64,000 nt of DNA, taken from assembly GCA_965202585.1 (NCBI GenBank), contig OZ241827.1:70680001-70744000 (forward strand). The letters are read 5' to 3'. Shown here in pieces: positions 3,054 through 45,036 of the stretch. Source of the stretch: Thalia democratica (Eukaryota). The first letter of the stretch is position 1. Each line of letters opens with the position of its first letter. Under the pieces are notes generated by a model. It saw only the letters and a list, made by a program, of their open reading frames with translations, had not been told where the DNA came from and did not search any database. Position numbers and translations under genes: made by a program.

Positions 3054-3193
3054 CAGCTGCACATATTAAAAATGTGTTTTTTATTTCTACCTTTGTTTCA
3101 AAATCATGTGGCTGAAGTTATTTATATTTATAAATAAAGTTATCTAAAAAAAAATAAATATACTGTACCACATGTTTTTTTTCAGTATAAATA
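3054..3193 (+). promoter_or_regulatory. Core promoter of A1: three E-boxes plus TATA
   Basis: CAGCTG 3054, CATGTG 3105, CACATG 3169, TATAAATA 3186. The same order and near-identical spacing recur upstream of A2 and A3, and partly upstream of A4. Confidence 0.6.
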
Positions 3194-3919
3194 TAGGCTG
3201 AATGAAATCTTAACATAAAATAAAAAGCTATTCTTATTGTTTAACAACAGAAAATATTTTTTAGGTTAGTGAGAAGTATGTTTTTTTTTTCATATACACT
3301 TAATAAAAACATATATTTGAAAAAGTATAAATTTTTGAGTTTTGAGAATAAGTAAAAGTTCTGATATAATAAAAATTAAAACTATTTATTAGTATTAAAA
3401 AGTTAAAAATCATTGATATTAGGGAGAAAATTAACAGCATAGTTAATTTGCACTTAATAAAAGACTTTATAAAACTTTAGTACAAAAATAAAACAAAAAT
3501 GTCGTTTAAAATTTGATTTTGTTAATTTTTTTATTATAATATTTATCATGATTACTTAACTTTAAGTTGCAATATTTTTTAAAGTTACTTAAATGTTCTG
3601 CTTAAGTGGTTAGTTGTATTTAATTACACCGTTTTAAAATTTATTTGTAAGAATACTTTACATGATCAGACAACAATTTAATTATTAAGTTAATATATTT
3701 TTTAACGAATGAATCATAACATTGTCAAACTATAAAAAATTAAATTTATTTTTTTGCTAGATATTTTTTAAACAAATCTTTGCAGGTTTTCAATATGATA
3801 ACAAATTAAAAGTTAGTACGTAAATATTTAATCTATTTACAAAAACTGTTTCTAAATAATGTTATTGTCAATTTCAATTCATACAGGATTATTTAGAAAC
3901 TTGTTTTACTGAAACTAAA

Positions 3920-4069
3920 ATGCCAGAAAACCCAGACAAACCAGATAAACCTTGTTGGGATATTGTACCGTACGTACCTCCAAAAGAAAAAACTCCCCCA
4001 CCTACTCCCCCACCAACTCCTACAAAAACTCCCCCACCAAGTCCAAAGAGACAGGAAGATAATAAGTAG
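3920..4069 (+). CDS. Pro-rich microprotein A1, 49 aa: MPENPDKPDKPCWDIVPYVPPKEKTPPPTPPPTPTKTPPPSPKRQEDNK
   Basis: GC-rich island in AT-rich DNA; acceptor CATACAG ending 3886; AAA-ATG context; homologous ORFs at 8873, 18141 and 24585 with equivalent stop position and shared downstream element. Confidence 0.75.
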   Translation: MPENPDKPDKPCWDIVPYVPPKEKTPPPTPPPTPTKTPPPSPKRQEDNK

Positions 4070-4185
4070 TTGCAACGTCTGCGTTTGCCATAATTGCCCC
4101 GAGAATAAAGCAAAACTCTGTGCTCTTGAGTACTTTTGAAATGTGGCAACGTTGTTTTTTTTTTATTGCTGACATTTCGGCTCAA
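4070..4185 (+). other. Conserved post-stop (3' UTR) element of A1
   Basis: TGCCATAATTGCCCCGAGAA...AAATGTGGCAAC...GCTGACATTTCGGCTC aligns with the other three A loci. CGTTTGCCA (4082-4090) can pair with TGGCAACG (4144-4151). Confidence 0.6.
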
Positions 4186-6983
4186 ATGAAAATTCTAAAT
4201 TTTCTTAAATCTGTAAATATTAATTAATATTTTTATCAAAAGACTTTTTTATAAACACATTTATTTTTCCCGTTCAATTGATTACTTATACATTTAATAC
4301 TCGAATTTTAAATACATTTCTACTACTTAGGTTTTAGCAAAACATCATCTTCTATTATCTGTTTTACAGCTGTATAAGCTTTTAAATACTATTTATTCTA
4401 TATCATGTAACTTATATTTTAATTTTTTCGATTTTTGTAAGTTATTTTTTTGTAAATATTAAACAGTCACTTTTTATATATGTTCAGATATTTCTATTAA
4501 ATACATTTGACAGTAAGCTAAAAATTTTAAGAAAAGTTTGTGTTAGCAAAAACTAGATCTTTAAATACATATGCCAACTTTAAATTACTACCTTGATTTT
4601 ATACATTCGAGTATAAATAAGATTTTTAAACTTTGAAACAACTATTTACTTTCGTTTTAGTCAAAAAAAAAAACTTTGGGTCTTAAATAATTCAAACTTT
4701 TAAAGCAATTTAGTTAGAACATCACTATTTAACTGCTTTTTTTTATATTTGTTATTCAACCTTCTGAGAACTTAATTGTAATTAGATATAAAACGTTTAT
4801 GCAGAGACTAAAAGTTTTATTGGAAAAAGTAGTAAATACTCACAATTCCTTTGTTTAAAGCTTTAATACATAAAATTAATAATTGCACGCTTAAGCATAA
4901 TGTTAGTAAAGTTAATCTAGTTTTATTTAATAATTTCATAGAAATACATTAATTAGTTCTATACTCATTACATTCAAAAGTTGATGATATACAGACTTGC
5001 TTTGGTTATACGGTGAAGCAAAAAAAATAAAGTAAAAATAAAAACCTTTGATTCAAATTAGTATTAAAAAAAAACCTTACAAAAACACACTTAAACACTA
5101 CTAAAAATAATTACTGCTAATTTAACTCGGATTTTAGTTTTGTAAATCTTAATTTCATGTTTAATATTTCCGAACTTGTTTAAAAATATTAAGTTCAATG
5201 TTTGAAACGTTTTATACAATATAATTACACAAAACTAATCTATTTACATAATCACAGTAGCTATTTTTTAATTAAATGTAAACCACACTTTATTAGTTTC
5301 TTTTTGATAATCGAATTTAAAATAGTTAAACGTGTAAATATCTATATAGCTTTTTAAAGTAACAAAAGAATATTGTGGTAGAACTTAATAGGTAACACTA
5401 AGAAAGAAATAATGCTTAGTTTAATCTTCAATAGTTTTACAAAACATAAGAAAAATAAAATACTTCAAATGTTGTTCGATTTTGGTAGGAAATGTATCTA
5501 AATTCTGTGAGAATTAAGGCTTATTAAACTTTTTTAAAAACAATGTACCAATTGACTAAACAAGTTTCAAAACGTTTTATTTCAAAATCATAGAATATTT
5601 TCTAAAGTACTGTGTTAAGCAACATATTCAGAGACATTTTTTACTTTTAGTTTTTAAGAATATTTAAAGTAAACAGCCTAAGTATGAACAACTAACAACA
5701 ATTAAAGTACAATTTTTGAGTTGTTTCTTTATATTAAAAGTTCAAAGCTATACACTATTAATAGAATATAATTATTTTCATTTTACTTTTTTTTTCTAAA
5801 ATTACCTTTTAAACGTTAAGCTTGCAGTGATCTTCTAATTCTAAAAACCTATTAAACACCAAGATACATTTTTAATCTCCTTAAGCAATCAGTTTTAAAA
5901 AAAAAATTCTTTTCATAATTTTTATACGTCGATTGTGGTACAAAACATCCCTTATTTTGCCTTAAAATCTTAACAAGAAAAAAAACAGTTGAGAAAAAAC
6001 AGTCTTTTAAACTAACATACTAATATAAGCATGAACTTAAGAAGATATAGTTTAATAGATTTTAGTATTAGTTTGTGTTCAATCACTGTATAAAGGGATA
6101 TTAAAGTTCACAAAACTAATTTAGACTGTGGCATTTACGACAATTGGTTCAAATATAATTTAGCTACTAAATACATATATGCATGTACTTGTTTATTAAT
6201 TGTTACAAAATTTATTACACATTCAAAGGCTATACTCCAAGTATTTTGCTTTTATAAACTTATTGAAACAACTAATTGACTTTTTCGATCTTTAAATTAA
6301 ATTTTTAGATCTTTAAATCATGGGCGTTCTAAATTTTGTTTCCGACAGAATAGATGCGAAATCTAGTTTAACAGCAAATTTTTTTATTTCATGTTATTGT
6401 TCTCAACTTTAAAATTGTGTTTTATTGTGAATTAATTTAGTTTTTTATTAAATTGATTTTCTTATAGTAGATTATCTAACTAGATAACAACTTTACATCT
6501 ATTTTTAAACGCTGTTGTTAGTAATCTGAAATTTAGTATACTGGGTATGCCTTAAAATGTGGTTAAATAATGTTAATATTATCATTATAGTAAACAGTGG
6601 TTTTAACTATGAGCTTAGTAGTACATTATTTTATAACAAACACACTATTTGATAACACTAGAACAAAAACAGAATGTTTAAATTAAACAACTACTTTGTA
6701 CTCTAACTTTTGACTCTGTTGTCCAGCAAAATAATTCTATATATTAATTTTGACTTTTACAATTAAACTTTAAACGACTCAGTTATGTGATTTAAACTAC
6801 TTTTTAACGCTGTATTTCTAACAGTCAGTAAATAATGTCTTCATTAGTATAAGTATCAAACTAAATTAGGTTTTTTAAATGTTTGACTTTATATGAGATT
6901 TTTTTGTCACTAATGTTTATTTTGTCTTTAATATTATTTTTTATTCCTACTGATACAGCAAATATTTCTAAATATATTTACAA

Positions 6984-8182
6984 CGTAAAATGTTATTGAC
7001 TTTTTATTATGTTTTGTTTGAATAAATAAAACAAAATCAAAGAAATCAAATGATAGATCAAAATTGCTGTTTTTTTATTTCTAAAACTTATGATCTTTAT
7101 TGACGAATCGTTTTAATTTTTTTGTTAAAGTTTTAATCAAAAGATTAAAAAGCTTTAGTCATGTATAAAGCTTATCGATATTAAGAAACTAGTATTTGTT
7201 AAATTTTTTGTTTAAAATATCTATAAAATACCTTATTAACATATATTAAAGTATTTTTTGATTAAGGTAAAACAGCCTTTTAATTGTCTTTTTATTTAAT
7301 TTTTACATTTTTATTACTTCTTATTTTAAATTACAAATTTATAGAAGTTTAGACCAAAAATAGTTTTGGGTCGATATAAAGAGCTTTCTTTGAAATATTG
7401 ACTCAGCTGCACATATTAAAAATGCTTTTTTAATTTCTATTTTTATTTTCGAAATCATGTGGTTGAAGTTATTTATATTTATATAAAAAGTTACTTATAA
7501 AAAAAGTTAATCAGATTATACCACATGCTTTTTTTCAGTATAAATACAGGCTGACTAAAAATCTTATTATAAAATATAGATGCGTAAAATGTTATTGACT
7601 TTTTATTATGTTTTGTTTGAATAAATAAAACAAAATCAAAGAAATCAAATGATAGATCAAAATTGCTGTTTTTTTATTTCAAAAACTTATGATCTTTATT
7701 GACGAATCGTTTTAATTTTTTTGTTAAAGTTTTAATCAAAAGATTAAAAAGCTTTAGTCATGTATAAAGCTTATCGATATTAAGAAACTAGTATTTGTTA
7801 AATTTTTTGTTTAAAATATCTATAAAATACCTTATTAACATATATTAAAGTAATTTTTGATTAAGGTAAAACAGCCTTTTAATTGTCTTTTTATTTAATT
7901 TTTACATTTTTATTACTTCTTATTTTAAATTACAAATTTATAGAAGTTTAGACCAAAAATAGTTTTGGGTCGATATAAAGAGCTTTCTTTGAAATATTGA
8001 CTCAGCTGCACATATTAAAAATGCTTTTTTAATTTCTATTTTTATTTTCGAAATCATGTGGTTGAAGTTATTTATATTTATATAAAAAGTTACTTATAAA
8101 AAAAATTAATCAGATTATACCACATGCTTTTTTTCAGTATAAATACAGGCTGACTAAAAATCTTATTATAAAATATAGATGC
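6984..8182 (+). repeat. Near-identical 599-bp tandem duplication covering the A2 promoter module
   Basis: The unit starting CGTAAAATGTTATTGAC occurs at 6984 and 7583. I saw only about three differences between the copies. Confidence 0.95.
8003..8145 (+). promoter_or_regulatory. Core promoter of A2 (proximal copy; distal copy 7404-7546)
   Basis: CAGCTG 8003, CATGTG 8055, CACATG 8121, TATAAATA 8138. Confidence 0.6.
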
Positions 8183-8872
8183 TATTGTTATTGTTTAACA
8201 ACAGATTTTTTTTCTTTATTGAGAAGTATGTTTTTTTCATATACACTTAATAAAAATATATATTTAAAAAAGTATAAATTTTTGAGTTTTGAGAATAAGT
8301 AAAAGTTTGGACATTATTTTCACATATAATAACATAAAAATTTAAATTATTTAATGGTATTAAAAAGTTAAAAACTATTGATATAGGGAGAAATTATACA
8401 GCATAGCCAGTTTGCACTAACTTTAATTATACTTTAGAGTTTATAAAATTTTATTAAAAACATAAAACAAACATGTCGTTTACAAATTTGATTTTTTTGT
8501 TATAGCATTTATCATGATTACTAAACTTTTAGTTTCTAAAGTTTAATAAAGTTACTAAAGTACTTTGCTTTAGTCGTCAGTTTTATTCAATTATACCGTT
8601 TGAAAATTTGTTTGTAAGAGTACTATATATTTTTTATTATTGTATTTTTCACGATAGAAGTAAAACAGTGACAAACAATAAAAAATTAAGTTTATTTACT
8701 CGTAAATATTTCTAAACAACTTTTTGTAGTTTTTCAATATAAAAACCAATTAAAAGTTAGAATTTGAATATTTAAACTGTTTAGAAAAACTGTTTTTAAT
8801 TGGTGTCATTGTCAAATCAATTCTTATCTTATTAACAGCAATATTTAGAAACTTTTTTTTACTGAAACTAAA

Positions 8873-9043
8873 ATGGCCGGACAAGCATGCAAACCAGATG
8901 AGCCTGGTACGAATATTGTACCGTACCTAGCTACGACATTCACAAATTTAATATCACCCCCGCCAACTCCGCCGCCAACTCCGCCACCAACTTTCCCGCC
9001 AACTCCCCCGCCAAGTCCCCAACCAAGTCCAAAGAAAAAATAA
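8873..9043 (+). CDS. Pro-rich microprotein A2, 56 aa: MAGQACKPDEPGTNIVPYLATTFTNLISPPPTPPPTPPPTFPPTPPPSPQPSPKKK
   Basis: Acceptor ATTAACAG ending 8838; ACTGAAACTAAAATG start context identical to A1; shared KPD.P...IVPY and TPPP repeats; stop aligned with the A1 stop. Confidence 0.75.
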   Translation: MAGQACKPDEPGTNIVPYLATTFTNLISPPPTPPPTPPPTFPPTPPPSPQPSPKKK

Positions 9044-9055
9044 CCGCAGCATCCA

Positions 9056-9143
9056 CAGTTGCCATAATTGCCTCGAGAATGGAGCAACTATGTTCTATGA
9101 TCGTGGTCATGCATGAGAGAACTCTCAAAATGTGGCAACACTG
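9056..9143 (+). other. Conserved post-stop element of A2 (predicted stem-loop)
   Basis: CAG-TTGCCA (9056-9064) is complementary to TGGCAA-CA-CTG (9133-9143); inner TTGC-CTC-GAGAAT-GGA-GCAA. Confidence 0.6.
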
Positions 9144-11921
9144 ATTTTGACAGCTCAGCTTAAACTAGCAAGTATAAATTTTCCTACGCGTGTAAATATT
9201 AGTAAAAAATTTGTATCACGATGCTTTAATTTTGAGTGACTTTCCGATCACTTATATATTTTTTTCGTGAGTAAATAGCAATTAAGAATTCTATTACTTT
9301 GGGTTCAGCAAAATATCAGCATTAATAATCGATTCAACAATTATAATGTTTTTCTGTTAAAGCTTGTAAATACTATTCATTATGTTTAATGTAATAAAGC
9401 TTGAAATTATAACGTTTCAATAAAGTTTTTTTTGTAAAAACTAAAATAATTATTTTAAGTTTTTTTTAACATTTTTTTTTCTTATATGCTTTTAATAGTT
9501 AGATAATATTTTTAAGATTAAATGTGTGTAAAAGAAAAGCTAAATATTAAAGTATTAGTACATCCAATTATAACTAAAATACTCAGACTTAAAAGCTGTT
9601 AATTTCTTTGGTTTTGGACAAAAAACCAAACCTTGGTCTTAATTTAGGCGTCCAACTAGTTTAAACTTTTAAAGTATTTGAGTAAGAATATTTGTGTTTT
9701 TTTTTTGTTAATTAATCATTCTTCTGGGAACGTTGTTGTAATTAGATTTTAACGCCAAGTTATATCTAATTACTAATCTCTGCAGAGACTAAAAATGCTT
9801 TTAGAAAAAGTAGTAAACATTTATTCCTTTCTTTAAGGCTTAAATAAATAATAATTACTAATTGCACGCTAAGCATATTTTTAGTTTCGTAAATTTAATT
9901 TCATTAAATAGTTTGTTAGAAAAAAAGAAATAAATTCTATATTCATTACATTCAAAAGTTGTTTTTATACAGACTTGCTTTGGTTATACGGTGAAGCGAA
10001 ACAAATAAAGTAAAAATATTTGATTGTAATTGATATAATAAAAGGTACAATAAAAAAATCACAAAAGTACATTTAAATACCATAAAAACTGATTAATGCT
10101 AATTTAATTTGGGTTTTAGTGTTGTAAATTTTAATATCATGTTCAATATTTATAATTTTGTTTAAAATTGTTAAGTTCAATGTTTGAAACGCTTTATTTA
10201 TATTTATATTTTGGTTAACTAATCTATTCATAATTTAACAGTTGCTATTTAATAAAAAAAATTAATCCAAATTTTGTTCATTCCTCTTAATACTCGAAAA
10301 TAAAACTTTTAAACTTGTAAAAATCTAAACAGCTTTTTAAAGCAACAAAATAATATTGTGCTTCAACTTGATAAGTAACAACAATAAAGAAACAACGCTT
10401 AATTGAACCTTTAATAAACCACAAAATTTTAAAAATGTGAAACGTTTGCAAGTGTAGTTCAATTTAGGTAAATGTATCTAAGGTTTTGTAAGAATTTAAC
10501 CTTGTTAAATTTTTTAAAAACATTATACTCATTGAATCAATAAAGTTCAAAGCATTTTATTTTCATCATTATAAAGTATTTTCTAATGAACTGTAGTTAG
10601 CAACATATTCAGAGAGGTTGTATGATTTTATTTATTCTTTAAGTTAAAAGCCTCTAAAATATGAACAACAACTATTTTGATTACTATTCTTTATCCTGAC
10701 AGTTTAAAGCTATACACTGTTATTAGAATAAAGTAATTTTTGCAATAACATTTTCTAAAGTTACCTTTTTTAACATAAAGCTGGCAGTGATATGCTGACT
10801 TTAATAACTAGTAAACACAAATATACATTTTTATCTCACTAACCTACAAGTTTAATGAAGAAATAGTTTCTTTTCACAGTTTTCACGGTCAATTATGGTG
10901 CAAACCATGACCTTATTTGCTTTAAAATATTAAAGTTATTTAAAAAAAAAACAGTCGTTCAAACTACTAAGTTAATAATCTAACTTAAGATTTAGTTTCA
11001 TATTTTTTTATATTTGTTAGTGTTCAATTACTGTCTAAAAATAGTTTAAAGTTCAGAAAACTAACTTAAAGTGGGGCGGGCATTAACGACAATTACTTCA
11101 AAGTTTACAATCCTTAGACGTACATATTTATTGGACAAACATTAAAATACTTTATGTCAAAATATATATTCCAAGTTATTTATAAAAAAAATAAACAGAT
11201 TTGCAAAAACAATTGAGCTTTATTTTTTAAGTCACGAACGATCAAAATTTTGTTGTACGGAATAAATGTAGAATGTTAGTAATTTTTTGTTAAGTTTTTT
11301 TTTTCATTTTGAAAACCTTGTTTTGTTTTCAAATAATTTGACTTTCAAGGAAACTTTTTTTTCTTGTGATAATTTAGGATACATACTAAAACATTTTTTT
11401 ATAAATATACATAACTTTAAGATTAAAATATATTTAACTAGTTTTTTTAAGCTAACTTTAAATTAACTTCGTTGAAATAACTCACATCGGTATTATATTA
11501 AAAAGTATCTTTAAATAAAATCAAACACACCAAGTTTTAATCATAAGTTTATTTGAATTTCTATTTTAAAATACCATGCTAAATAAAGTTTTTTATAAAA
11601 TAAATAACAGTTATACATAAAACAACTTTAAAATTTAAAAATAAATACTATATACTTTATCATTTAATATAAATAAATTATTAAAAAACTCAAGTTGTCA
11701 ACTTTATTTAAAAGCATATTTCTTTAAGTCATTTTTTCACAGAGTATTATTGTTTTTAAAATTTTAGTATAAAATTAAAAATGTTATTCGCAGCATACTA
11801 TTTTTTTAACATAATTTACTTTTTTTTACAAAAAGTTACAGCACTAAAAGCTTGTATTTAAAGATTATAAATAATTAAATTAAAAACAAATGTGTTTACA
11901 CTGAAACAAGTCTTTCGTTTC

Positions 11922-13709
11922 TTACATATTTTCTGAATCAAATCTATCATTTGTAGCCTTTTTTAAAAATATATCTTTATCTGGCCTGTCCGGTACATAG
12001 TCCTCCTGTAATTAACAAATAGTCAACATAAGTAAAAATGTTAAAAATATTTAAACAGAGTTGAATATGGTTAGTTTGAGTTTTTGTTAACAAAGTTACA
12101 ACTTAGGTAAATACTTTAATACAACTCACAATAACTAATTACGCTTATTTAATTGTTTGTCGTTCATATATCAAACTAATGCTAAATAAACTACGTTTTA
12201 CATACGTATGTTTCAATGTTAAAACTAGATTATTTTTTTTAGTTTTGATCAGCCTTAAACACTTATATTCTTTTAACTTACATAGAGCATGTTCATTCGA
12301 CACTGGTGCCTGAAGTCAACAATTTCCTTTTTGTTCTTCTTAATTTTCTTGCCAAATTCTTGCTCTTGTTTCAATTTAGTCAATCTCATCTTTAATAATT
12401 TTCTGTAACAGTTAAGATTTTTTTTAATCAAATTATTTTTACAGCCTTTTGTGAGACTTGTGAGGGGTTTTTCAATTTACTTGATATGCAAAATAGGGAA
12501 GCTATAATTTTTTAACAGAGAAAGCAGTTTAATACTTCATGTAAACAATAAATTTATATAACTTTTTAAGTAATTATCAGTTTTATTATTGATATTATTA
12601 GAAAAGTATGCTGGGTTTTTTTTAACATTATAAAACTCTTAATTTCAACATAAAGTATATGTAGTCACTTTAATAAAGCCTTTTTCGAAAAATTTCTTAA
12701 TAATAAGATAGTATAAAACTATACCTGCTACTTTCTACTTGTACTTTTTTTTAAATTTAGTTTAAAATATTTATTAGTTTAGACTTTTCAAAGAGTTTTT
12801 TATACTTTTAAACGCAAACTAAGTACTAAACAAAACCTTTTACAAAAATATTTTTTTCTACAATAACGAGAATATTTTTTTCATTAATTTACCTGTCGAA
12901 GTCTGACACTGACATACTGTCCAGTTTTCTATTTGTCTCTAATATTTCCATTCTCCTGTCTTTATCTAACTTGTCTTGAAGGAAGTTATAATATAAGGTA
13001 ACCCCTTCAAGTGAATCTTGTGTAGTTTCTAAAAGTTTTTGAATAATAATAATATATAATACTGTATCGAAACATTGCGTTCTTGCAAAAAATTAGCAAA
13101 AACTAAAATGTGCATAAGTACTGCAGTGAAATTAAATATTTAAGTGTTAAAAGTGTGTAATTCTAATTATTAGGTTTAGCTTTTACCCGTAATAAATCGT
13201 TTTCGTTGCAAGGCTCTGGGTGTTTCAGTATGTTGTGAAGAATTCAAATGCTTGTTTTGAACCTGCTGTTAGTTGAAAATAAATGTTAACAACCTTTTTT
13301 AAAAATGCCAAGTTTTTAACTTTCTTAAAATATGTTATCTTAAGGTTTTTTGAAAAATTTAAGAAAATACGACATGCAGAAATTGAAGCCATTTAAAACT
13401 AAGTAATCAATCTGTCGTTCTATATCAACTAAAATATTTTATAAATAGAGTTTCATTTTGTTTTAGAGACTTTGACTAAAAAAAGTTGACTAATGAACAT
13501 AACTATTAATAGACTGTTTCATGTTACTAACTTGTTATTAAGACCATTATTCCTTACTATAACATAACGCAGAAGCTCTTAAACATTTGTTTTAATAACA
13601 GCTACAAGCTATAAAAAAAGTTCAATATATCAAAGTTAAAAAAACAAACCTCATAATTCAAATTTTCCAATTGTGAATTCTCAAAACTTTTTGGTGCTTG
13701 GTTGTCCAT
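11922..13709 (-). CDS. Five-exon uncharacterised 158-aa protein (exons 13650-13709, 13187-13262, 12893-13028, 12282-12402, 11922-12005)
   Basis: All four introns are GT-AG and the phases join into one open frame (477 nt): MDNQAPKSFENSQLENLNYEVQNKHLNSSQHTETPRALQRKRFITETTQDSLEGVTLYYNFLQDKLDKDRRMEILETNRKLDSMSVSDFDRKLLKMRLTKLKQEQEFGKKIKKNKKEIVDFRHQCRMNMLYEDYVPDRPDKDIFLKKATNDRFDSENM. Family not recognised. Confidence 0.75.
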
Positions 13710-16700
13710 TTTTATACAATTTTAACTATCAATACACTAGACACTCTATAGATAAATTTTTAGTTAAATAAAAACTTTTTTCAAACAGGTAAAAGAAATA
13801 CTTATTTTATAAATCATACAGTGTTTTTGTTAATAAGTTTTTTATTGTCTTTTATAAGTATAAAGAAGAACTATTTATTTAACAATTAAGTTTTAATATA
13901 TATTAACATGTCAAAAAACAACAAAATGTAGTTTTATCATTTTATTAGTATGTATTACGTTATCAACAACGTTTTAGTTCTTTTATTATACTATTTACCT
14001 TAATAGTATGTAAATTTAGTAAAAAATTTCCTAGCTATTATGAATTAAAATGAAAATTTTTAGTACACATCAGCTATAAACTAACTCTATATTTAATAAT
14101 TAAAATATTTCGTTTGGAAAGTATTAAATTTAGAAGTTTCGGTATTTTTTTTTAATACTAACTCTTATATGTTGCTTTATTTGCTTTTTTATTGATAAAG
14201 AACCAATTTAAAACTTTAAAATTTTATTTATCTATCCTAACCTGATACTTTGAAACCAAAAACAAAGCTTAAAAACAGCTTCAACATAAGATTTTATTTC
14301 AAATGAATTAAAGCATAACAAGTGAATATATTACACACATTATGTTTGAAATTAACTTGAAATTCTTTAAGATGCTTCTAAAATAAATGAAAAACATGTT
14401 GCAGCATTTTTTTCTTAAGAAATTAATTTCTAAATTTAATGGTATTCAAATATTTTAGTTAATTAAACTATTTCGACTTTAAGTTAAGCTTTAATTTTTT
14501 TTTTTTTGATATTAATATATTACTAGGATAAATTTATTATAGCCTGGTAGTTTTAAAGTTTATTTAAACATGTTAGATTGATTATTAAGTTGTTAGTGAA
14601 TCTAAAGTAAAAGTTCTTAAATGTTATTTAAGTGATGGCATGGTCGTTTAGTTACAATGACTTAGTTAGTTTATAATAAACTTTAAATACACATCTCAAG
14701 AACTAAAGAAAATAAATATCAGGTTTACGGAAATTTGCTTTATCATAAGTCCATTTTCAAGTGGTTTTGTTATTTGTGAATATGTATATAATATGCTACA
14801 CATAAGTTATTTCTACAATTTAAAAAATAAAATTTACTATTTTTTACAAAATACTGAATGTATTTAAAAAACAACTGCAGTTATTAGCTCAAAAACATTG
14901 ACAAGTGTACTTAATTTACAATTTTGAGCTAAAAATAAGAAAATTATTGTAGAAATTCCTTTATTAATAAGCTATGTACAAAAAATATCATAATGTAGAA
15001 CTAAATACTTAAATAATTAAATTGGCTAGTAAAAAAGCTGTTTTTAAAGTGTTTATTTGATATTTAGTAGTTACAACTTAGCACTTCATATGTAAACCTA
15101 CTAAACTACATTTTACACTCAGATATTTTTTCAGTTAAAATCTAAACTTGTTTCTCTTTAGTAGCAAAAGACTTCGGAAAATCAAAACCTTGACCTAGAG
15201 CTGTCACGAAACCTCGGTTAAAACTTCTTTAATAAAAAGAATGTATTAGATTGAGTTCACAATTTATATAAGTTCCTTAACAATAAACATGTCAGCTAAT
15301 ACAATCGACTACTAACACAAGTTTTCCCAAAAGAGTTAACTTAGAAATTTGATAAACTAGTTATGAAACTATGTATTATATATTAAGATTACAAACAATT
15401 AAACATTTATTTTGATAATATAACTATAACTTACAAGCATAGAACATTTATATGATTCACAAACTTTTTGATTGTATGAAGTTAAAACTAAATCATTATT
15501 TTGAAGAAAACTAAAACAACAGCAAAACAATTTATTCTTAAAAATAGTTTGTTACTTTAACTCTTAGTTCAGAGGAACAAAAATAAACCATTTCCAAACT
15601 TTTGTTAAAATATTACTCTGTTTAATAATAAGTTAGTTGGTACTTTCATTGTGCTGAATTTAAATCTTTTGCTTGAATTCAATTCAAATCTAATAATATT
15701 CTTATAAAAACTATTCAACATTTTTTATAAGCTTCTTTTTCTTAAACCTTTATAGTAAAGCATTTTATACTTTTAGTTATATTAAAAACCATAATCACAT
15801 TTACAAGTGAGTTCTCAAATCAACTTTGAATGCTTGAATGATCATTAATAGATTAAACGTTTAACATTCAAAATTAAGCCAAATATATCTGAAGTTAAAT
15901 GAAAACAATACAAGGTTTTTTTTTTACTTTAAAAGTTTAAACTTTATTCAATATCAATGATCAAAATAATAGGTGTATATTAATTACAAAACTATATATA
16001 TTTTATTTCCGGTTAGTATGTAGACATGTTTGTACCATAAAATTGCTAAAAAACAGTAAAACTTTTTTTTTTTTGAAGCTCAGTAAGCTAAAGATAATAT
16101 AAGTGTTTAATTGTTTTTTAACACATTGTAAAATGCACATTAAAATTGTTTATTTTTAGAAAAATTAACTCAACAGAGAAGAATAAAAAATTAGTAACTA
16201 AAGTAAAGCTTTAAACTGTTACGAAAAAGTACTAGTCAAAAGTTGTATATTAATTTCTATAAGTTATCAAATCGTTTATAGATTCTTTTATATGGAATCA
16301 TTGCTAAAATACCAAAAAATATACTGTCCTCAAATATTCTTTTAGATCAGTAGATTAAAAACTAATTTGTGATATCGGAAAGAAAAAGCTTTATGCTTCT
16401 AATTTAATAGAAATACTTTATTGTAAAACTTAAATAAATAGCGCTTTAATCTTAAAAATTCTATGACATACTTTTCCTTACTAAAATTAGTGATAGACTG
16501 TTATTATTTAATCATTTTAAATAGTTCGTTTACTTTTATAATTATTGTAGTTACAACCAAGTAAAGTTTTAATGTTGTCTAAGAAATTTCAAAAGAATAA
16601 TATTGTGTTACTTTTTAAAATTGTTTAACTGTTTTGAACTTTACGAATTTTGAGGTTTAAAAACTGAATATTACAATATTTTCTTTTTGTACGTAAGCCT

Positions 16701-17879
16701 TAGATTACGTTGATCAAGTTAGAATAATTGTAGTACAGCTTGGTAAAGCAACTAAAAAAGTAAGTGTATGAAACACGTTTTATAAACATAAAAAACTCTT
16801 AAGCATTAAATATAACATAAAAATTTTGCCAAAACTAAAACTTAATTGCAGTTAGTATGTAGTTATTGTTTTTAAAAGCTTTTATTGTCTAAGTTCTATG
16901 CCATTTAACTATCACATAACAACTTTTGTTTAACTTTGATTTGACACTTGACGTTTGGTTCATAGATTCTGCTTGAGTCTATAACTTAAAAGTTTTAACT
17001 AAAATAAGTGGAATGAATAAAAAGCTTTTGATATAGTGAGTTTAAAACTTTTTCTTTTGTTTTGATACAATAATTTAGTTTAAAAGTAAATTATCATTAG
17101 AAGAAAAAATTTAGTGCACAACTAGAAAATATTTTTCAATTTTAACGAAACCAAAAACAAGTACTTTCTACTTTTTTTTATAAACTTTTTTACGATTTGT
17201 GAAAGTTTTATATTGTATTGTAAACTTTGTGATAATTACGTTCTCAGACAATTGAGATAATAAAATTTATAATAATTTCTATCAATTTATATATGAAAAA
17301 TTAATTTAAAGTCAATTCTTTCCAATGTTTTACCATTTTGCTAGTTTTATTTTAACGAAGATTTTTTTATTTAACTAAACCCAAAGAAATTATTAATTCG
17401 ACATTTAAAAGCTTTTGGATATATTCGACCGAATTTTATTTAGGTTTATCTTTATTTAGGTTTAGGTTTATTTTAGGTAAGCATTTCGTATACATTTAAT
17501 TTTGTTTTTGAACTACTAGCTCACGATTGTTATAAGTAAGTACTAAAATAAGAAATTAATGTATTAATATCTGTATAAAAAAAAAAGTTACAGAAAAGAG
17601 TAGTTGTTACAATAATATGAAGCTACATAAAAGTTTTATCTTTAAGCCTTGATAGCATGATAACTAATAGCAATAATTTAAATAATATTTACAAGCTTCA
17701 TAAGTAACAACTTATAATCAAGCATTAAAGTACTTATTATGCAATAGTCAAAGGGGCAAAATGTTAATTTCTATTTACAAACGAAAAAGATATAAGTCGA
17801 TTTACTAAGCTATAAACTAACTAGAAAAGCAATACAAGTATTAAGTGTTATTTAAATACAAAAATGAATGTAGAACTAA

Positions 17880-17990
17880 ATGTTCGAGCTGAAATATCAG
17901 CAAAAAACAAAAACAGTGTTGCCATTTTTAAGAGGTGTATAATCAAAGTCATAGAGTTCTGCTCCGTTCTTGGGAAATTATGGAAATTTA
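17880..17990 (-). other. Conserved post-stop element of A3
   Basis: Minus strand TTCCATAATTTCCCAAGAACGGAGCAGAACTCTATGAC...AAAAATGGCAACACTG...GCTGATATTTCAGCTC aligns with the A1, A2 and A4 elements. Confidence 0.6.
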
Positions 17991-18012
17991 TGGACATATT
18001 TCAGTGCTGCAG

Positions 18013-18141
18013 CTAGTTTTTCGGTCGGGGCGTCCCCGGTCTTTCTGTCGGAGTCGACGGCCTTGGTGGCGAGGGGGGCGGGGTCGGTTTTTTCACAGGT
18101 GGATCCCCCCAATCGTTTCTGTCTTCATGATTTCCGGCCAT
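18013..18141 (-). CDS. Pro-rich microprotein A3, 42 aa: MAGNHEDRNDWGDPPVKKPTPPPSPPRPSTPTERPGTPRPKN
   Basis: Acceptor AAATTCAG 22 nt upstream; AAA-ATG-GCC-GGA start as in A2; TPPPSP motif; TAG followed by CTGCAGCA like A2 (TAA CCGCAGCA). Confidence 0.75.
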   Translation of the reverse strand: MAGNHEDRNDWGDPPVKKPTPPPSPPRPSTPTERPGTPRPKN

Positions 18142-19128
18142 TTTCTTATCAGTGTTAAAACGTCTGAATTTAATTTAATGATTTTAATTAAAACATTAGT
18201 GTAAATGTTAGTGTTAATAATCATAGTACAAAAAAAAACTACAAATATTTCAAATATTTATTAAAATATTTTTTTTTGTACAGTTTTTTCATACTAATTA
18301 CTTTGTAAATAATTAGAAAGTGATTATAAGTTTATTAAAAGTTTCAATACTTTTTATATACTTAGCTTACAATTTTTTTATTTCACAGCACACAGAATAA
18401 ACATGGGGTTAAAACGTCTAAATGTTTTAGTTAAAAGTTATTTAAATTTAAATATAAAAGTTACTTTGAAATAGTTTTCGTTTCACGGCTTAAACATTTA
18501 TAGTACTATCTCAAAATTTTATTATTTAAGAAAAGTTTTAAAATTTTCAAATTAACAAAATATAAAACTTTTTTAAGTATGTTTTATTTTTAGTTATATT
18601 GGCTTATAATGTATTTATTAATTAAGCTGTTTTTTTTCGGCAATCTTAAATATTTTAAACACTTTTAAAAAATTGCATATATTTATAAAAACTAAAATTT
18701 CTTAAAGTTTTTTGGTAACCTTATAAATTTTTGACACTTAGATGTTAAATATTAGATAAAATTATTAAAGTTAAAACATTTGTTATATAATTTAATAAAA
18801 GTCTTTTAATGACTTACATATACTTCTGCTTAACAAATACTGTGAGCTTTTTAAGTAATAAAATCAAATGCAATCACTATCATTACTAAAAATTACGATC
18901 TATGAATTATTAAAAATATGATATAATGATTATATCAGTAATTTTTTAGCTTAAAAACAGCTATGTACTATTTCTATTTATTCAAAATAATTAGTAAATA
19001 AACTCTTTTCTCATATACACTTGTTATAAAAACAAACTGCTTAGGTATTTTAAAATAAATTTTGCCGTTTAGTGATAATGACAGCATTTGTAAATGAAAA
19101 TGATAATAGTTTAATATTCACTCGTTTT

Positions 19129-19264
19129 TATTTTTAAAAAGACATGTGACATTATCTGATTCATTTAGTGTAAAATATATTTTTAGTGAATAATAATAAC
19201 TTTAACCAGATGCTTTTGACTATAAGCAAACTATTCACTTATAAAAATTTATTATGCACAGCTG
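19129..19264 (-). promoter_or_regulatory. Core promoter of A3: three E-boxes plus degenerate TATA
   Basis: Plus-strand coordinates: CAGCTG 19259, CAGATG 19207, CATGTG 19143, then TAAAAATA on the minus strand. Spacings of 52 and 64 match A1 (51 and 64). Confidence 0.55.
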
Positions 19265-19663
19265 GATGAACACATAAATAAAAGCTGTTTAAATCGCTAT
19301 ATTAAGTTTTTTTGTCCCAAGTTTATATCTATAACTTTATAGCTTTTAGTCATAAAAGAAATAAAAAGGTTTGTAGTTAATGTTTGAAGCACTTTTTTGA
19401 TTTATTGATTAAAGCTATAAAACTCGTGATAAGCACATTTAAAAAGTGATAAAAAATCTTCTTAAAATGATTTTTTATGAAATCATGCCAGTAGACCTTT
19501 AATATTAACATTAAAATAATATAAGTCCTGATCTCAATATCAAACCTAACTTCAAGGTGACACAACTTCTATTGATCTCTTTATTAATTTTTTTTTTGAA
19601 ATCATTCACAACAATTATTTTTCTTTAAACCACATGATATTTGATTTACAATTCATATGATGC

Positions 19664-19684
19664 CACATGATATTCAAGTATAAA
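19664..19684 (+). promoter_or_regulatory. Putative core promoter of B1: E-box-N9-TATA
   Basis: CACATG ATATTCAAG TATAAA, about 840 bp upstream of the B1 ATG. Same geometry as the A promoters and as 25808-25830. Confidence 0.45.
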
Positions 19685-20519
19685 ACAAAACCAAAATCAG
19701 CTTAAAGTTCAGAAGCTTTTGTTTTTCTACAGTAGAAGCTATACGTTTATAAAATGAAACAGTTTGTTCTTTTTGAGTAGAAATAAAAGAACATCTAAAC
19801 TCAAGTTTATAAACATGATAACCATGTATCAGTGAAGAATTATGCAAGATAAAAATTTGTAATTAAGTATTATAATGTTTTATTTTTACTAAGTATAGTA
19901 ATATATATTTCTGCATAAGTAAGCGTAAATAAGTATAATATGAAAATAGAAAATTAGTAAAAATACAACTTTTTAGGTATTTTGTTTTGTCTAAAGAGTC
20001 TTTAAAAAACAAAAGATAACTACAACTAATATATGTTTTTATAATTTATCAATATACAATAGTGAAAAATTTTGTTAATGGGTTTTAGAAAATAGTCTAG
20101 TAAAGAAAATTAAACGAGACCTGTTAATGTAAATAAAAGTTAAAGCAAATTTTAAAGAAAGTTTTTTTTTGGGTTGTGTTTAAATCAAAATGTGAGTATA
20201 ACTATTTAAAATAAATCTAATTTATTAAACTTTATTTTAAAACTAAAAAAGTTATAACTAAGACTGTTTATTCATTAATACTAATTTATATCATTACAAT
20301 CAATTTTAGTGTATAAAGTTTATACGGTTTAATCTGAACCTATACACTTTGTTTAACTATTTAAAATTTTTAAGTATTTTAAAAAACTTATCTCTGTTTA
20401 TATAAAGTTATTTTTTAGAGAAATTACTACTACTTGAAAATTATACTTTAAAATATTATTTCTATAAAATATAAAAGTTTGTAGGTTAAAAAACAGTTCT
20501 ACTTACTTCTAATACTAAT

Positions 20520-20621
20520 ATGGAAATGGCAAACTGTGTACTGTACACTAAATCTAATGGTGATGAAGACTTTAAAGTATCGATTAAAGACAAAACCGAT
20601 CAAACAAAAAACAACGAATAA
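20520..20621 (+). CDS. Microprotein B1, 33 aa (31 aa from the conserved second ATG at 20526): MEMANCVLYTKSNGDEDFKVSIKDKTDQTKNNE
   Basis: Candidate acceptor AACAG about 23 nt upstream; aligns at protein level with the reconstructed B2 ORF; 5' leader and downstream region are homologous between the two loci. Confidence 0.6.
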   Translation: MEMANCVLYTKSNGDEDFKVSIKDKTDQTKNNE

Positions 20622-20713
20622 CCACTATCCACTTGTGACTTCACATTAAAATAACCACTGTCTACTTGTGACGTCACATTCAAATAACAACCATCAACTC
20701 ATGACATCATATT
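20619..20713 (+). repeat. Three 33-bp tandem repeats beginning at the B1 stop codon
   Basis: TAACCACTATCCACTTGTGACTTCACATTAAAA at 20619, TAACCACTGTCTACTTGTGACGTCACATTCAAA at 20652, diverged third copy at 20685. Homologous repeats at 26720 and 26753. Confidence 0.8.
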
Positions 20714-21142
20714 TCTGAACTTCTACTTATTGTACATACATAGACTATTGATTTTTACTTTTTTTACTGAGTTTAAAAAAAAAATTCAAGTAAATGCTAG
20801 CTGAAATATTTTTAATAACACTAAAGAGCTATAAGCAAGCAAACACTACTTTTAAATTTTATTTTTAACAAAGATAAAACCACTTTCTAATCTAAAGCAT
20901 TTTCTTTCGATTTAAATAAATCATTATATATGTATATTAAAATATATATATTAAAACTTCATAGCTTTTATTAATATGATAAACATAATTTTTTGAAATA
21001 TTTTTTTCTCACCAAATTTAGTAATTAAATTGAGTGAAGCTACTTTTCAAAGGAAAATAGTGTAAATAAACATATATTAAAACAATTTCAATATAAAATA
21101 TTAAGTTATATATTTTAAAATGTGTTTTATTTGTATTTAAGG

Positions 21143-21466
21143 CAGGGGTCGGCGAACTGCAGCCCTCAAAGCAAAAATCTGGGCCCGCGAGGTACTTTTT
21201 AACTAAAAACACACTTTTATAAAAACATATAAAATGAAAAACTTTGCAAATACAACTTACAATTAGGCTCTTGAATTAAGTTACTTAACTAGTGCTATTG
21301 TACTGCTTGTATTATAAAACACAAACTTTGAATCGTATTTTTCTATAAATTTCTATGAATATTTTTGAATATAAAAACTTGAAAACTTTTTTGTAAACAG
21401 TGCGGCCCGCGAGTAATTGATTTCTGAAAAATTAGCCAGCGAGTTACAAAAGGCTGCCGACCCCTG
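21143..21466. mobile_element. Non-autonomous hAT MITE, 324 bp
   Basis: TIRs CAGGGGTCGGC / GCCGACCCCTG and a perfect 8-bp TSD ATTTAAGG (21135-21142, 21467-21474). Confidence 0.92.
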
Positions 21467-24343
21467 ATTTAAGGTAACCACTTAAATTCCCAAGTACTTA
21501 TACCTAAAGTGGTTGTCTTTAGTTTATAACAACCCATAAAATGAAACATCTCAAATCAAAATATATTTATGTTTACACTTATGAACTGAAGTTTAATATG
21601 ATATTTTTATACTCAAGGAATTGAAGTTAGCTTTGAAAAGTTATGTTGTATTTAATATTAGAGATGTTCAATTTTCATAAAGTATTTATTAAACAACTGC
21701 TACTCTTTAACACATAATTGATGCAATAAAGTTTTTTCCTATCTTTTAAAGCAAAAGTAGACATACATTTTGTAAGCAGACTTTACTCTTAATAAGAAAC
21801 ACAAAGTTAAAAAAAATAACATTGTTTCAAGAAACTAAGTTTTTATTTATACTTGGAGCTTAATAAGCTAAAATTTGTATTAAAATTTCAGTTACTTATT
21901 AAAGTTCAACTACTAAATGTTTTTTATTTGCAAATTTTATATTTTAAATTTGTGATTTTCAGAAAGAGTGTGCTATTTTAAAAGTACAAAAATATATAAT
22001 AACTGGTGTATAGCTATAAAACTTAATAATAAAGATTAAGAAATTGATTAAAAGTTATAAATATAATGATTATCAATTGCTTTATTTACTAATTTTAGAG
22101 TATTTTAGTTAAAAAAGTTGGTTTAACAATAAAAGTAAGCAAATTGTTTAATAGATAAATAAATAATTAGTTTAAAACTATTTGTCTATGTTTAATAAAA
22201 AGCCAATAAGGCATTTACAACAAATGTATGTTCGTAAAGTTTTAAAATGATTTTAATTGATATATGCCCACAAAACTTACATGAAGTTGTATTAAGTTTA
22301 TAACAAATTCACACTAAAAATACACTGAAAATACAAATAAGTACAAGTTTGCCGAACGATGTTATCTTTTAAAACATCGCTTACAAATTTTTTTTTAGTT
22401 TTTTATGTTGTTTAGCTTATAAGTTCGAATCCGAGTATTAGATTAAAAAGCTGATTTAGTTTTTATGACAAACATGTGCGGTAATTTGTTCAGCACAGTT
22501 AGATGAGATAGTTTTATGATAACAAAAGAATTAAAAAGTTTTAGAAATAGAAATTAATACAAATAATCACTTTAAAATACTAAGATTATCTAAATCACAT
22601 ATAAAAAGGGAGAACTACTTGTTTTTTTCACTCGGTGATGTTTTAGTATTAGTTTATTATAGTGCTCTCCTACTAGCTACTGTATATACTAACTTTATGG
22701 AACGGGTTTAAAAAGCATAAATATTTTTTAACGCTTTAGACACTTGTTTTAAAATATTTATACAAATGTGTGTACAAAGCTGGTAAGTAAAATATGTTTC
22801 AAATGTTTTAATACCAAGGTTTTACTTTTTCAATTTACATTTGCACAGATTGGATTCTAAAGAACTATGTTGTTTTGTGAAACAGTATAACTAAAGATTG
22901 GTTTTTCGTAGTATATCCGTAGCTTTAATTAGTTCTTTTTCTCTACTTACGAATTTACAGATTTTAAACCTATGTTGCTGTTATGTATTTTCTGATGTGT
23001 TTTTGTGATCATCAAGATAGTATACTAATTTTATCAAGTTAAATAACAAATAAAGCATGTATTTAATTATAGTTAGAAAGGGTATTAATTTTAGAAACTC
23101 TTTGACATGTTTTTATCAAAAATTATTGATAAGCAAACATGATATTTAGATTTTTAATATTTTTTTACAGAAGTTACGATTAATTTTTATTTTAGTAAAT
23201 CTTTTAAAATATATGACATGATTATTTTGTTGATTCTGACTTTTTGTAACAGTTTAAAATTTTTGAATTTGAGTATTAAATAGAAATGATAAAAAACTAC
23301 TTAATATTGATAGCAAACAGCTGATGTTCTTTAATCAATATAACTAGATAAGATTAAAATAAAAGTAAGTAAAGAAAACATGTTTTAAATATTATACTTA
23401 ATATAAACACTTTATTTTGCATGTATTGAATTTTTACTTAAACGTTTGTTAGGACTCATGGTTTATGGCAATTTTACTGAGACTTTATATGTTAATTAAA
23501 CTTTTTTAACTACATTTTATTCATAAACTTACATTAAATACTTTTTATTTAACTTGGTGGTTCCAGTTAAAGTAAATATTAACAACTGTACCATAAGTAG
23601 TAATCTTATAATTTGATCACTTACTTTTGATTTGTTAAATAAAAACTAATGTTTCAAAGTAAACATATCGTAAAACAAACTTTCAAGCGTTAACATAGTA
23701 AATGTTTACAATAACTGAAATCAAGATAAAATCAGCTTATACTTTTATAGTTCATTCTAAGATATGTAGATGTGTTTTATAGTTTTTTATTTAATTATTA
23801 TTGTCTTGTTATATAATAGTTTTAATAATTAAAACATTAACACACTAAATCACTTTATTAGATTAATCTCCTATATGTTTAAAGTAAGTTATTTTTTGGG
23901 TTTTAATTGAACCATTTACAATATTTATTTAAACCTATCAAAGTTTTAAAAATTTAATATTTTTATATGTAAAAAACTAAATATATTAAATTTAATGAAT
24001 TAGGTGATACGAAACTTGGTTAATTATTTTAATATCAAAGTTTTAGTTACATTTGTTTTTATTATATAAATGTTATCTTACATTTTCAAACTATTCGTAA
24101 AAAGTTTTCATAACAATAAAAAACCATCAAAATAATTTTGATGTTTGCTGGTTAATAACTGGATAACCGACACTAAAAGTTTACTTTGTATAAAACATTA
24201 TTTACAAGCATAAACAGTAGCGCAAAACACTATAGAGTTAATCTTTGAAGCATTTATTTTGCTCAAATCTAAGATAAAAATGTTGGTTGATATTTACAAA
24301 TAAATAAAAGTTGAAAAGTGATTGAAAAAGCTGCTATTTTAAG

Positions 24344-24432
24344 TACAATGTTGCCATATTTTAAGATTTCCCAAATTTATAATCATGATCATAGTACTTA
24401 GCTCCATTCTCGGAGCAGTTTTTGCAACTGTA
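24344..24432 (-). other. Conserved post-stop element of A4 (predicted stem-loop)
   Basis: Minus strand TACAG-TTGC pairs with GCAA-CA-TTGTA; perfect inner hairpin GCTCC-GAGAAT-GGAGC. Confidence 0.6.
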
Positions 24433-24444
24433 GATGAATAACAA

Positions 24445-24585
24445 CTAATATTTCACATCTTTCGGCAAATATGGCGGATAAGGCGGAGGTGTACGAGGTT
24501 TTTGAGGCGAACCTGGCAGAGAAGGCCGATCTGGAGGCTTGCAGCTACACTCTGTTTTATCCGGTTCGCCCGTGTATTCGGTCAT
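24445..24585 (-). CDS. Pro-rich microprotein A4, 46 aa: MTEYTGEPDKTECSCKPPDRPSLPGSPQKPRTPPPYPPYLPKDVKY
   Basis: GC-rich island absent from the ORF track; candidate acceptor TTACAAG 18 nt upstream; 5' leader AACACTAAT similar to A3 AACACTGAT; same downstream element and promoter as the other A genes. Confidence 0.72.
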   Translation of the reverse strand: MTEYTGEPDKTECSCKPPDRPSLPGSPQKPRTPPPYPPYLPKDVKY

Positions 24586-25303
24586 CTTGGATTAGTGTTG
24601 AAACTTGTAAATGTTTTTATAAATATCTATGGTGACTTTGTTTTCAAATGTAATCCTTTAAGATGAAGTTTATAATAATACACAAATTTTTATGAGCTGT
24701 TTAAGCTTAACAGTTCATAACTATACTGAAATCAAAACAAAAATGTTTAAAACATATTACTTATAAATTTTAAACTTTGTTTAAAAAAGTTATTTTCAAA
24801 AATAAAAGCTCTAACTTAACGATTAAATTGTTGTTTGAATATCTAAAGGCTCCAGAATATTTTTTTTAATTATCTTTATACAAGACAGTAGAGAAATTCT
24901 AAAATAGTTTTAGTAACTTTAGTAGTTTTAAAAAGCAGAGAATTTTTATTTATTAATAAATATTAAAAATTAAATAAACAAAATTAAACCGTTTCACTAA
25001 ATATTTGTTGTAAAAACAAAAATTATACAAAACTAAAATACACAAAAAAATTGATAATTATATTATGTATTTTTCCCTAATAGAATCAATAGTTTATTAA
25101 TTATTGAATACCATTAAATAGTTTTAATTTGTACATTAAAAAAAATCTTTTTTATTTCTACTTATTCTGAAACATTTTTTTAACTTTATTTTAACGTAAG
25201 TGCTTTTAAAAATAAATACATACTTTTTAAATTCCTAGAAACAGACTTTAGTTGTATAGGCAAATTAACAACTCATTATAATAACATTGTGTCATTTATT
25301 CTT

Positions 25304-25537
25304 TATTTATACTCAAGTATGCATGTGATATCATCTGCTTTATTCTATTTATATTAATAAAAATTTAAACAATGTTTAATCTTAAAATAAATTTTATAGT
25401 CAAATGACAACAGTAATACTTTTGATCGAAATTAAAAACATTTCAGTCTGTATTTATACTTAAAAAACATGTGATATCATCTGACTTAATCTAGTTATAA
25501 ACAATTAAAAAAAGGTATGAATATATTCAAACAGATG
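25304..25537 (-). promoter_or_regulatory. Core promoter of A4 with a duplicated E-box/TATA unit
   Basis: Minus strand CACATG-TTTTTTAAG-TATAAATA-CAGACTG (E-box at 25468) closely matches A2 CACATG-CTTTTTTTCAG-TATAAATA-CAGGCTG. Second copy at 25322; CAGATG at 25532 is 64 bp from 25468. Confidence 0.6.
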
Positions 25538-25807
25538 CATGATCTTTATATAAACTTTTTAATTAAAACTACAATCTACATTAGTAAAGTTAAACAAATA
25601 AACTAAAGCGCCATATTTATAACACAAGTTTATTCTAAACTTATGTAGTTTTATAGTTTTTAATCTTAAAAAAGGTAGCAAAGAAAAATTGTTGAAGCTT
25701 CTACACTGTTTTTTTTAATTGATGTTTATAAAAAAGTTTATAAATATGTTTTAGCGAAATTTTAAAATAAAGACTTTTTTCACTTCAATACATTACAAAT
25801 ACGATTT

Positions 25808-44397: not shown

Positions 44398-45036
44398 TGT
44401 AACGAACCAATCATTACATTTTATGTTTCGTTTTATTTCAGAAGAGTTAAAGTTAAAGAATTTCAATGTTTTCAGTGACGTCACAACTAGTATTGAGAAG
44501 AGAAAATGAGAAAAAGAAGCGTGAAGTAAATTTGAGAGAAAGAGTTTAAAACTTAGCTTGCAGACGCGAGTAGGCGGATTAGTGACGGGAGAGACGCGAG
44601 TCGGCGTATTACTACCGGGGGAGAGAACGCACAAAACGACGTGTTGACTATAGGATTGCGAATCGTATGATGAACAATCGAGAAGGGTTTTATTGATAGA
44701 ATGTGGATAGAATACTTGATCGTCCAGTCTACTTTCTGTACATTTCAACAAAATGTTTAGTAGTTAGTATATGTGCCTACTGGGCTCTTATCAGAAGTCA
44801 TTGGTTTTAATTTCTTTTCTTTCACTTATTTCACGATGTGTTTATTAATGTTGTATATAAAATCACGTGCACTAATAACTAGTTTTTATATTATTATTTT
44901 CATGGTAAGTACTAGTATATCAAATTAAGCCTGCGTTCCATCTGAACGTCTGTAATACTTTAAATAACCGTTTCTTGTTATCTTATTTAAGAGCAGCTAA
45001 ACCAACCTAACAACATCGTAATTGATGACGGTTACA
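44398..45036 (+). repeat. 5' LTR
   Basis: Differs from 49371-50009 at only one position that I could see (AATTTGAGAG versus AATTTTAGAG). Confidence 0.95.

Follow-up and report, generated by a model that had tools for sequence, protein, structure and literature searches.

The window analysed here, a 64,000-nucleotide stretch of the genome of the salp Thalia democratica (contig OZ241827.1, positions 70,680,001 to 70,744,000; G000:C2:70680001-70744000 in an assembly of 800 Mb), holds in its first 30 kb, where the DNA is 20-27% GC, four of six small two-exon genes that probably form a lineage-restricted tandem family, each likely to encode a short proline-rich peptide. A first-pass annotation had proposed four such genes as a lineage-restricted, tandemly expanded family. 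The four short open reading frames (ORFs) were found at exactly the positions and on the strands it had given, and this view of the family was upheld, but its size was corrected to six, as two more copies lie upstream of the window. The copies inside the window are named A1 to A4 and the upstream copies Am1 and Am2. The latter were found about 5 and 11 kb upstream, respectively (G000:C2, approximately 70.669-70.675 Mb), using a profile built from the A1-A4 units, and the six members form one cluster of about 35 kb, with four on the forward (+) strand followed by two on the reverse (-) strand. Furthermore, a model of the post-stop element, a conserved block that follows each ORF, matched six sites in the cluster and gave no other strong match in the whole genome. 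Judged from the DNA alone, the orphan gene family is real and rather cleanly built; its anatomy, reading frame, copy number and gene conversion can be read from the sequence, and its transcription, splicing and translation are predicted from it.

The ORFs of A1-A4 are islands of 45-60% GC inside DNA of 22-25% GC. A1 occupies positions 3920-4069 (+; 49 codons plus TAG), A2 8873-9043 (+; 56 codons plus TAA), A3 18013-18141 (-; 42 codons plus TAG) and A4 24445-24585 (-; 46 codons plus TAG), and the coding sequences of the upstream copies lie at window coordinates -5012 to -4863 (Am1, +) and -10804 to -10628 (Am2, +). ORF length over the six copies is 42-58 codons, and the ATG and the stop are in aligned, in-frame positions in every copy. 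The alignment thereby confirmed the earlier claim of a stop at a homologous position, which is TAA in A2 and TAG elsewhere. Forward frame 0 is the sole frame of the six without stops in all five independent copies, so that the strand and frame first proposed are the only ones that fit every copy; under dinucleotide shuffles, the probability of an open frame is 0.07-0.52 per copy. An in-frame stop lies between the splice acceptor and the ATG in two copies (TAG in A2, TAA in A4), and the ATG is therefore the start. A common extension of the frame by stop read-through is not supported, with the next in-frame stop about 4 to 27 codons further on and at non-homologous places (alignment read by eye). 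The base composition of the ORFs is also in phase with the ATG. GC content at first and second codon positions (GC1 and GC2) is 0.56-0.68, and at third positions (GC3) it falls close to the background, four copies having 0.23-0.38 and A3 a higher value of 0.54, a contrast with a pooled chi-square p of 1.3e-10. Long ORFs elsewhere in the window have a GC3 of 0.26-0.30, matching that of the family. The GC-rich islands persist in A3 and A4, although the flanks of these two copies are only about 50% identical to the other copies.

Each ORF is preceded by a promoter module that is kept in A3 and A4, where the surrounding DNA is unalignable. The shared upstream promoter of the first-pass annotation does exist, but its position in A1 had to be revised, as the modules lie 726-991 nt upstream of the ATG, outside the start that had been given for the feature. 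All units have three E-boxes, placed near -132, -81 and -17 relative to the TATA box (TATAAATA), and their density is 3.0 per 150 nt in the promoter modules compared with 0.39 in the background. The A1 module (3054-3193, +) contains the E-boxes CAGCTG, CATGTG and CACATG, with TATAAATA at 3186-3193. A2 has a proximal module at 8003-8145 (+; TATAAATA at 8138-8145) and a distal copy at 7404-7546 (+), the latter derived from a 599-bp tandem duplication (6984-7597 and 7583-8193, 98.7% identical). In A3 the module (19125-19264, -) contains CAGCTG, CATCTG and CACATG with a degenerate TATA box, AATAAAAA, and lies 991 nt from the ATG. The A4 promoter (25304-25560, -) comprises two tandem E-box/TATA modules about 147 nt apart, the distal TATA box starting at 25458 and the proximal TATAAATA lying at 25304-25311. 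Neither of the extra distal copies, in A2 and in A4, is followed by a splice donor. The family would thus be driven from a TATA-box core promoter with three E-boxes in front, and because these are fixed in position we infer regulation by basic helix-loop-helix (bHLH) factors.

Between promoter and ORF, the signals of a single intron in the 5' untranslated region (5'UTR) recur. A GTATG splice donor is located 80-85 nt past the TATA box in five of the six copies, including the old copy A4 (80 nt past its proximal TATA box), and in five copies 726-754 nt separate the TATA box from the ATG. The AG acceptor reported at first pass was confirmed 18-34 nt before each ATG (22 nt in A3); given the AT-rich genome, an acceptor AG alone is weak evidence, and the matching donor adds weight. 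The putative intron of A1 extends over 3276-3886 (+), from the donor gagaa/GTATGT at 3276 to the acceptor acag/G ending at 3886, that of A2 over 8226-8838 (+; gagaa/GTATGT to aacag/C), and that of A4 over 24604-25223 (-), from aaaaa/GTATGT at 25223 to acaag/T ending at 24604. Transcripts would begin with a non-coding first exon of about 50-55 nt (in A1 ending at 3275, its start predicted from the TATA box), followed by an intron, which in five copies measures about 610-640 nt, with the promoter of A3 farther upstream, and by a second exon holding the complete ORF. An unspliced leader would contain 5-11 upstream ATGs, which splicing would remove.

Downstream of the stop, the shared element claimed at first pass was confirmed in all copies. 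It spans 4082-4170 in A1 (+; GTTGCCAT ... GAGAAT..AGCA ... TGGCAAC) and, as located by alignment, 9056-9160 in A2 (+), 17905-17995 in A3 (-) and 24335-24432 in A4 (-); between old paralogues the block is still alignable, with 75-79% identity over about 90 nt. Each copy also has two to three exact occurrences of TGTAAATA in the first 400 nt past the stop, in sense orientation and at offsets that match across copies (about +145, +235, +320 and +385). These lie at 4212-4219 and 4451-4458 in A1 (3'UTR stretch 4212-4458, +, with ATTAAA about 389 nt past the stop), at 9191-9198 and 9365-9372 in A2 (9191-9372, +), at 17772-17779 and 17686-17693 in A3 (17686-17779, -), and at 24291-24298 and 24199-24206 in A4 (24199-24298, -). 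Fourteen of the 42 occurrences of TGTAAATA in 104 kb (both strands) fall within 2.4 kb of sense-strand 3' regions. In five copies AATAAA or ATTAAA occurs at about +350 to +395, a signal that carries little weight in DNA so rich in AT. The predicted 3'UTR would be about 350-420 nt long and would contain the conserved element of about 95 nt and two to three UGUAAAUA motifs. UGUAAAUA is the core of the Pumilio response element, and the mRNAs targeted by Pumilio/PUF proteins carry the response element UGUANAUA. The family resembles such targets in the number of exact UGUAAAUA motifs per predicted 3'UTR and in the retention of their offsets in old paralogues, but differs in that the bounds of its 3'UTR are predicted and that the eight bases also contain a forkhead-type DNA motif. 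From these motifs, we infer that the family mRNAs may be under Pumilio control.

Proline accounts for approximately 30-40% of the residues in the encoded peptides, which are rich in (S/T)P sites and in most cases close with a basic (S/T)P-x-(K/R) tail, and all four window peptides keep the TPPP(S/T/Y)P motif, as had been noted. All six copies have a short, charged and hydrophilic N-terminus, which bears out the reported absence of a signal peptide, the feature that would have placed the family with secreted proline-rich peptides (antimicrobial peptides, salivary PRPs, extensins). AlphaFold returned no secondary structure (predicted template modelling score, pTM, of 0.23) and a confident extended geometry over the proline-rich half. 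Searches for relatives agree with the view that this is not a described family: for four peptides Pfam listed no family even at E up to 10, and for a fifth only compositional matches, no homologues were found in a word-indexed protein search, the ESM Atlas or a PDB profile search, and the post-stop element had no Rfam match at E up to 1 (window 1-30000). The product is predicted to be a cytosolic peptide with an extended polyproline stretch and no fold; a single bHLH-defined tissue would produce it, with its translation controlled via the 3'UTR. Most likely, the peptide would act as a disordered polyproline ligand of short length, be phosphorylated by proline-directed kinases, or both.

An independent sample of the family was obtained from a profile search of 1.84 billion representative proteins, which gave one match, 46 residues long and identical to A4 at 43 of the 46. 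Its source is a 707-nt assembly contig from the European Nucleotide Archive (ENA) that is collinear with the genomic DNA, including the intron. The ORF of this A4 variant is intact, with no indel, four synonymous changes and three replacements. Frame-disrupting indels in orthologs had been named at first pass as counter-evidence; the variant shows none, which is favourable but a weak test, as so few changes rarely break a frame. The variant is most diverged in the post-stop element (12%), followed by the intron and 5'UTR (8.7%), the rest of the 3'UTR (6.6%) and the coding sequence (6.4%). In addition, a run labelled as another organism contains parts of A1 and A2. Contigs of the matching DNA-type runs provide evidence of presence, haplotype variation and a double-depth conversion tract, and contain no transcripts. 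As a separate observation on A2 (8713-9183), every contig over this stretch in the best-matching runs differs from the reference, by 25-38 substitutions and 10-29 gap letters, at 2-4 times single-copy depth, which points to haplotype or copy-number variation; one A2 variant has 'YPP' in place of 'YLA', as in A1.

Several observations weigh against a family of translated genes. Searches of public runs with a 5.9-kb and a 330-nt sequence of the cluster matched no RNA run, the matching runs being of DNA type only; the exact peptides are absent from a collection of 15 billion proteins that includes transcriptome assemblies; and the profile search found the A4 variant alone, on a DNA-like contig. 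A3 has neither a clear TATA box nor a clear donor. C-rich sequence has few stops, so an open frame alone is weak evidence. Conservation is no higher in the ORF than in its flanks (A1 and A2 are 67% identical in the ORF, 78% upstream and 66% downstream), and the third-position excess of changes is weak. Although pN is lower than pS in every paralogue pair, this carries little weight, as the sequence is of low complexity and the protein alignment served as the guide for the codon alignment. The post-stop element is not private to the family, as dispersed relatives without the ORF exist, and GTAAATA also fits a forkhead DNA site, which makes the Pumilio reading non-exclusive.

Some of these points would be accommodated if the units were transcribed with a non-coding RNA as the functional product, the C-rich tract and the post-stop element acting as RNA and the ORF being incidental. 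This is unlikely, but it deserves to be considered with care. In its favour, the ORF changes at the rate of its flanks, a C-rich tract has few stops in any case, and the post-stop element is the best-conserved block among old paralogues. A run of 86 nt within the ORF of the A4 variant is also without any change, even a synonymous one. However, every copy has its ATG and stop in frame, no other frame is open throughout, the three-base GC periodicity is strong and phased with the ATG, and splicing would clear the upstream ATGs, leaving the ORF's ATG as the one close behind the acceptor. Moreover, the element shows no covariation, its consensus fold being -6 kcal/mol with no compensatory pair, and it is without an Rfam match.

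The units may alternatively be inert remnants of segmental duplication, in which the shared blocks result from descent and gene conversion and have no present function, but this is distinctly improbable. The matching public runs gave no transcripts of the units, and the four + strand copies do lie within tandem duplicates of 4-5 kb that are alignable over kilobases at 66-84% identity; because these duplicates are young, the similarity of their flanks says little about constraint. Gene conversion is likewise active at the cluster. Between A1 and Am1, identity rises from about 80% in the flanks to about 100% over 3753-4167 (+), a tract spanning the end of the intron, the ORF and the post-stop element. 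A read unitig covering 3753-4164 has about twice the depth of its neighbours, and the identical tract is therefore no assembly artefact; on the evidence of the alignments it is a case of gene conversion (homogenisation). What remnants alone do not account for is the state of A3 and A4, which share with each other and with the remaining copies only the promoter, the ORF island, the element and TGTAAATA, in the same order and orientation, the sequence that separates these modules having decayed to about 50% identity. GC-rich islands would also be expected to decay in a 22% GC genome unless maintained. The duplication history is more complex than first proposed: the tandem expansion is retained, but A3 and A4 do not represent one clean older duplication, both being old and separately diverged. 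If the units are coding genes, selection appears to act on the integrity of the ORF and on proline-rich composition rather than on exact sequence. Retained across copies are the open frame, the proline-rich composition, the TPPPxP core and the basic (S/T)P-x-K/R end, and the A1-A2 ORF alignment contains a single indel, of 21 nt; indels in the flanks are of arbitrary length.

A true gene on the opposite strand, encoding a Gly-rich peptide, is highly improbable and was rejected: longer mechanical ORFs (60-98 codons) do cover the islands of A1-A3, as described at first pass, but they start at TTG or GTG with no shared start, change frame between copies, are interrupted in some and absent for A4, and the TATA box, donor, acceptor and TGTAAATA are all oriented the other way. 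It is equally hard to credit that the whole unit is a non-autonomous transposon, which was rejected because complete units occur in this cluster only, inside larger tandem duplicates; the post-stop element has short inverted ends and relatives elsewhere, but only this element of about 95 nt is dispersed, and, in keeping with the first-pass annotation, no transposon carrying a complete unit was seen.

Relatives of the post-stop element are present at no fewer than 15 other loci, seven of them on the cluster's own chromosome, with model hits of 16-61 bits. A 16-base box of the element occurs at 18 places in the genome with at most one mismatch and at none in the control. A BLAST search with one dispersed copy recovered nothing beyond the query, and a strict two-box pattern matched a single locus; the dispersed relatives are therefore few and diverged. 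Neither a proline-rich ORF nor TGTAAATA motifs were found in the dispersed copies examined. A metagenome scan for the element gave 20 matches, all of 17 bits or less by the model, and these were counted as chance. Some relatives are located in local duplicates or arrays, and one array is intronic and lies beside repeated exon-edge copies. The element is similar to miniature inverted-repeat elements in its length, its inverted ends, its relatives elsewhere and their occasional local arrays, but differs from them in that the inverted repeats are of only 7-9 bp (GTTGCCAT ... ATGGCAAC), that no clear target-site duplication was seen around it and that its copy number is low. In our reading, the ancestral 3'UTR already contained this old repeat fragment, which the copies have kept. 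Two side observations concern the same sequences. At positions 1250-1800 of the locus L057 (G000:C10:29140284-29143299), exon-edge copies (...cttgctcggacac..tgacacgcaagcctgcag) alternate with relatives of the post-stop element. A distinct, palindromic element, some 75-80 nt long and with inverted ends of roughly 20 bp, was found at G000:C5:29507160-29507235, C5:79314800-79314878, C8:36014199-36014278 and other sites; its ends open with GTTGCCATAATT, as in the post-stop element, and it is a clearer candidate for a miniature inverted-repeat element than the post-stop element.

The neighbours of the cluster in the window are kinase-like genes, with a kinase-like exon at 33133-33351. Closer to the family, a 33-codon ORF (20520-20621) is found on the strand opposite to A3, 1.3 kb past the A3 promoter, and self-comparison revealed no copy of it beside the + strand A genes. 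Inverted duplicated gene segments at 34294-38260 and 57678-63036 share exon-sized blocks of 64-85% identity and contain long Ser/Lys-rich ORFs. Two direct repeats of 640 bp (44398-45037 and 49371-50010), 99.8% identical, 5 kb apart and each with the same short ORF, look like the two long terminal repeats (LTRs) of a young retroelement; between them, at 48344-48644, is a short tandem array of units of about 95 nt that are 89-93% identical.

Small genes of this kind fall below the usual ORF-calling thresholds and have no homologues, so that standard annotation would miss them, and the conserved layout of promoter, donor, acceptor, ORF and 3'UTR provides a precise gene model. Because low-complexity orphan families are common, this one is of moderate importance. 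If the genes are real, they represent a compact case of selection holding composition and frame while the sequence drifts, an example of gene conversion in a tunicate tandem cluster, and candidate translationally controlled microproteins in an animal whose molecular biology has been little studied.

Among known systems, Mst84D and Mst87F of Drosophila are male-specific clusters of tandem tiny genes that encode low-complexity proteins of 50-70 residues. These are Cys-Gly-Pro repeat proteins, and their mRNAs contain a conserved short cis element for translational control, situated in the 5'UTR. The salp family is comparable in its tandem tiny low-complexity genes with a short conserved mRNA element, but it lacks the Cys-Gly-Pro repeats, does not have the control element in the 5'UTR and has no homology to these genes.

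A closer parallel in layout is offered by the simple genes of the epidermal differentiation complex (EDC), which have a non-coding first exon, one intron and the entire coding region in the second exon (PMC4423139). With the genes for small proline-rich proteins (SPRR) and other simple EDC genes of amniotes the salp family shares a tandem arrangement of very small genes, TATA-box promoters, the same two-exon layout, homogenisation of paralogues, and proline-rich, repetitive, rapidly diverging products without signal peptides; the layout and the TATA box together are predicted in five of the six copies. However, the salp peptides have no sequence similarity or Pfam match to this group, the SPRR/cornifin model included, they are half the size of SPRR products, and they come from a tunicate rather than an amniote and from outside the amniote EDC. 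Ends rich in Gln and Lys, on which transglutaminase acts, are not readily seen in most salp copies, in which lysine is common at both ends of the peptide and glutamine is frequent only in Am2. The likeness is one of architecture only, and most likely convergent. It would be a long shot to suppose that a tunicate has independently evolved an SPRR-like cluster, in which Lys-ended intracellular peptides, expressed in a bHLH-defined tissue and controlled by Pumilio, act as polyproline switches or building blocks that can be cross-linked or are phosphorylated at multiple sites; if true, the layout of the simple EDC gene and its concerted evolution would have arisen twice in chordates.

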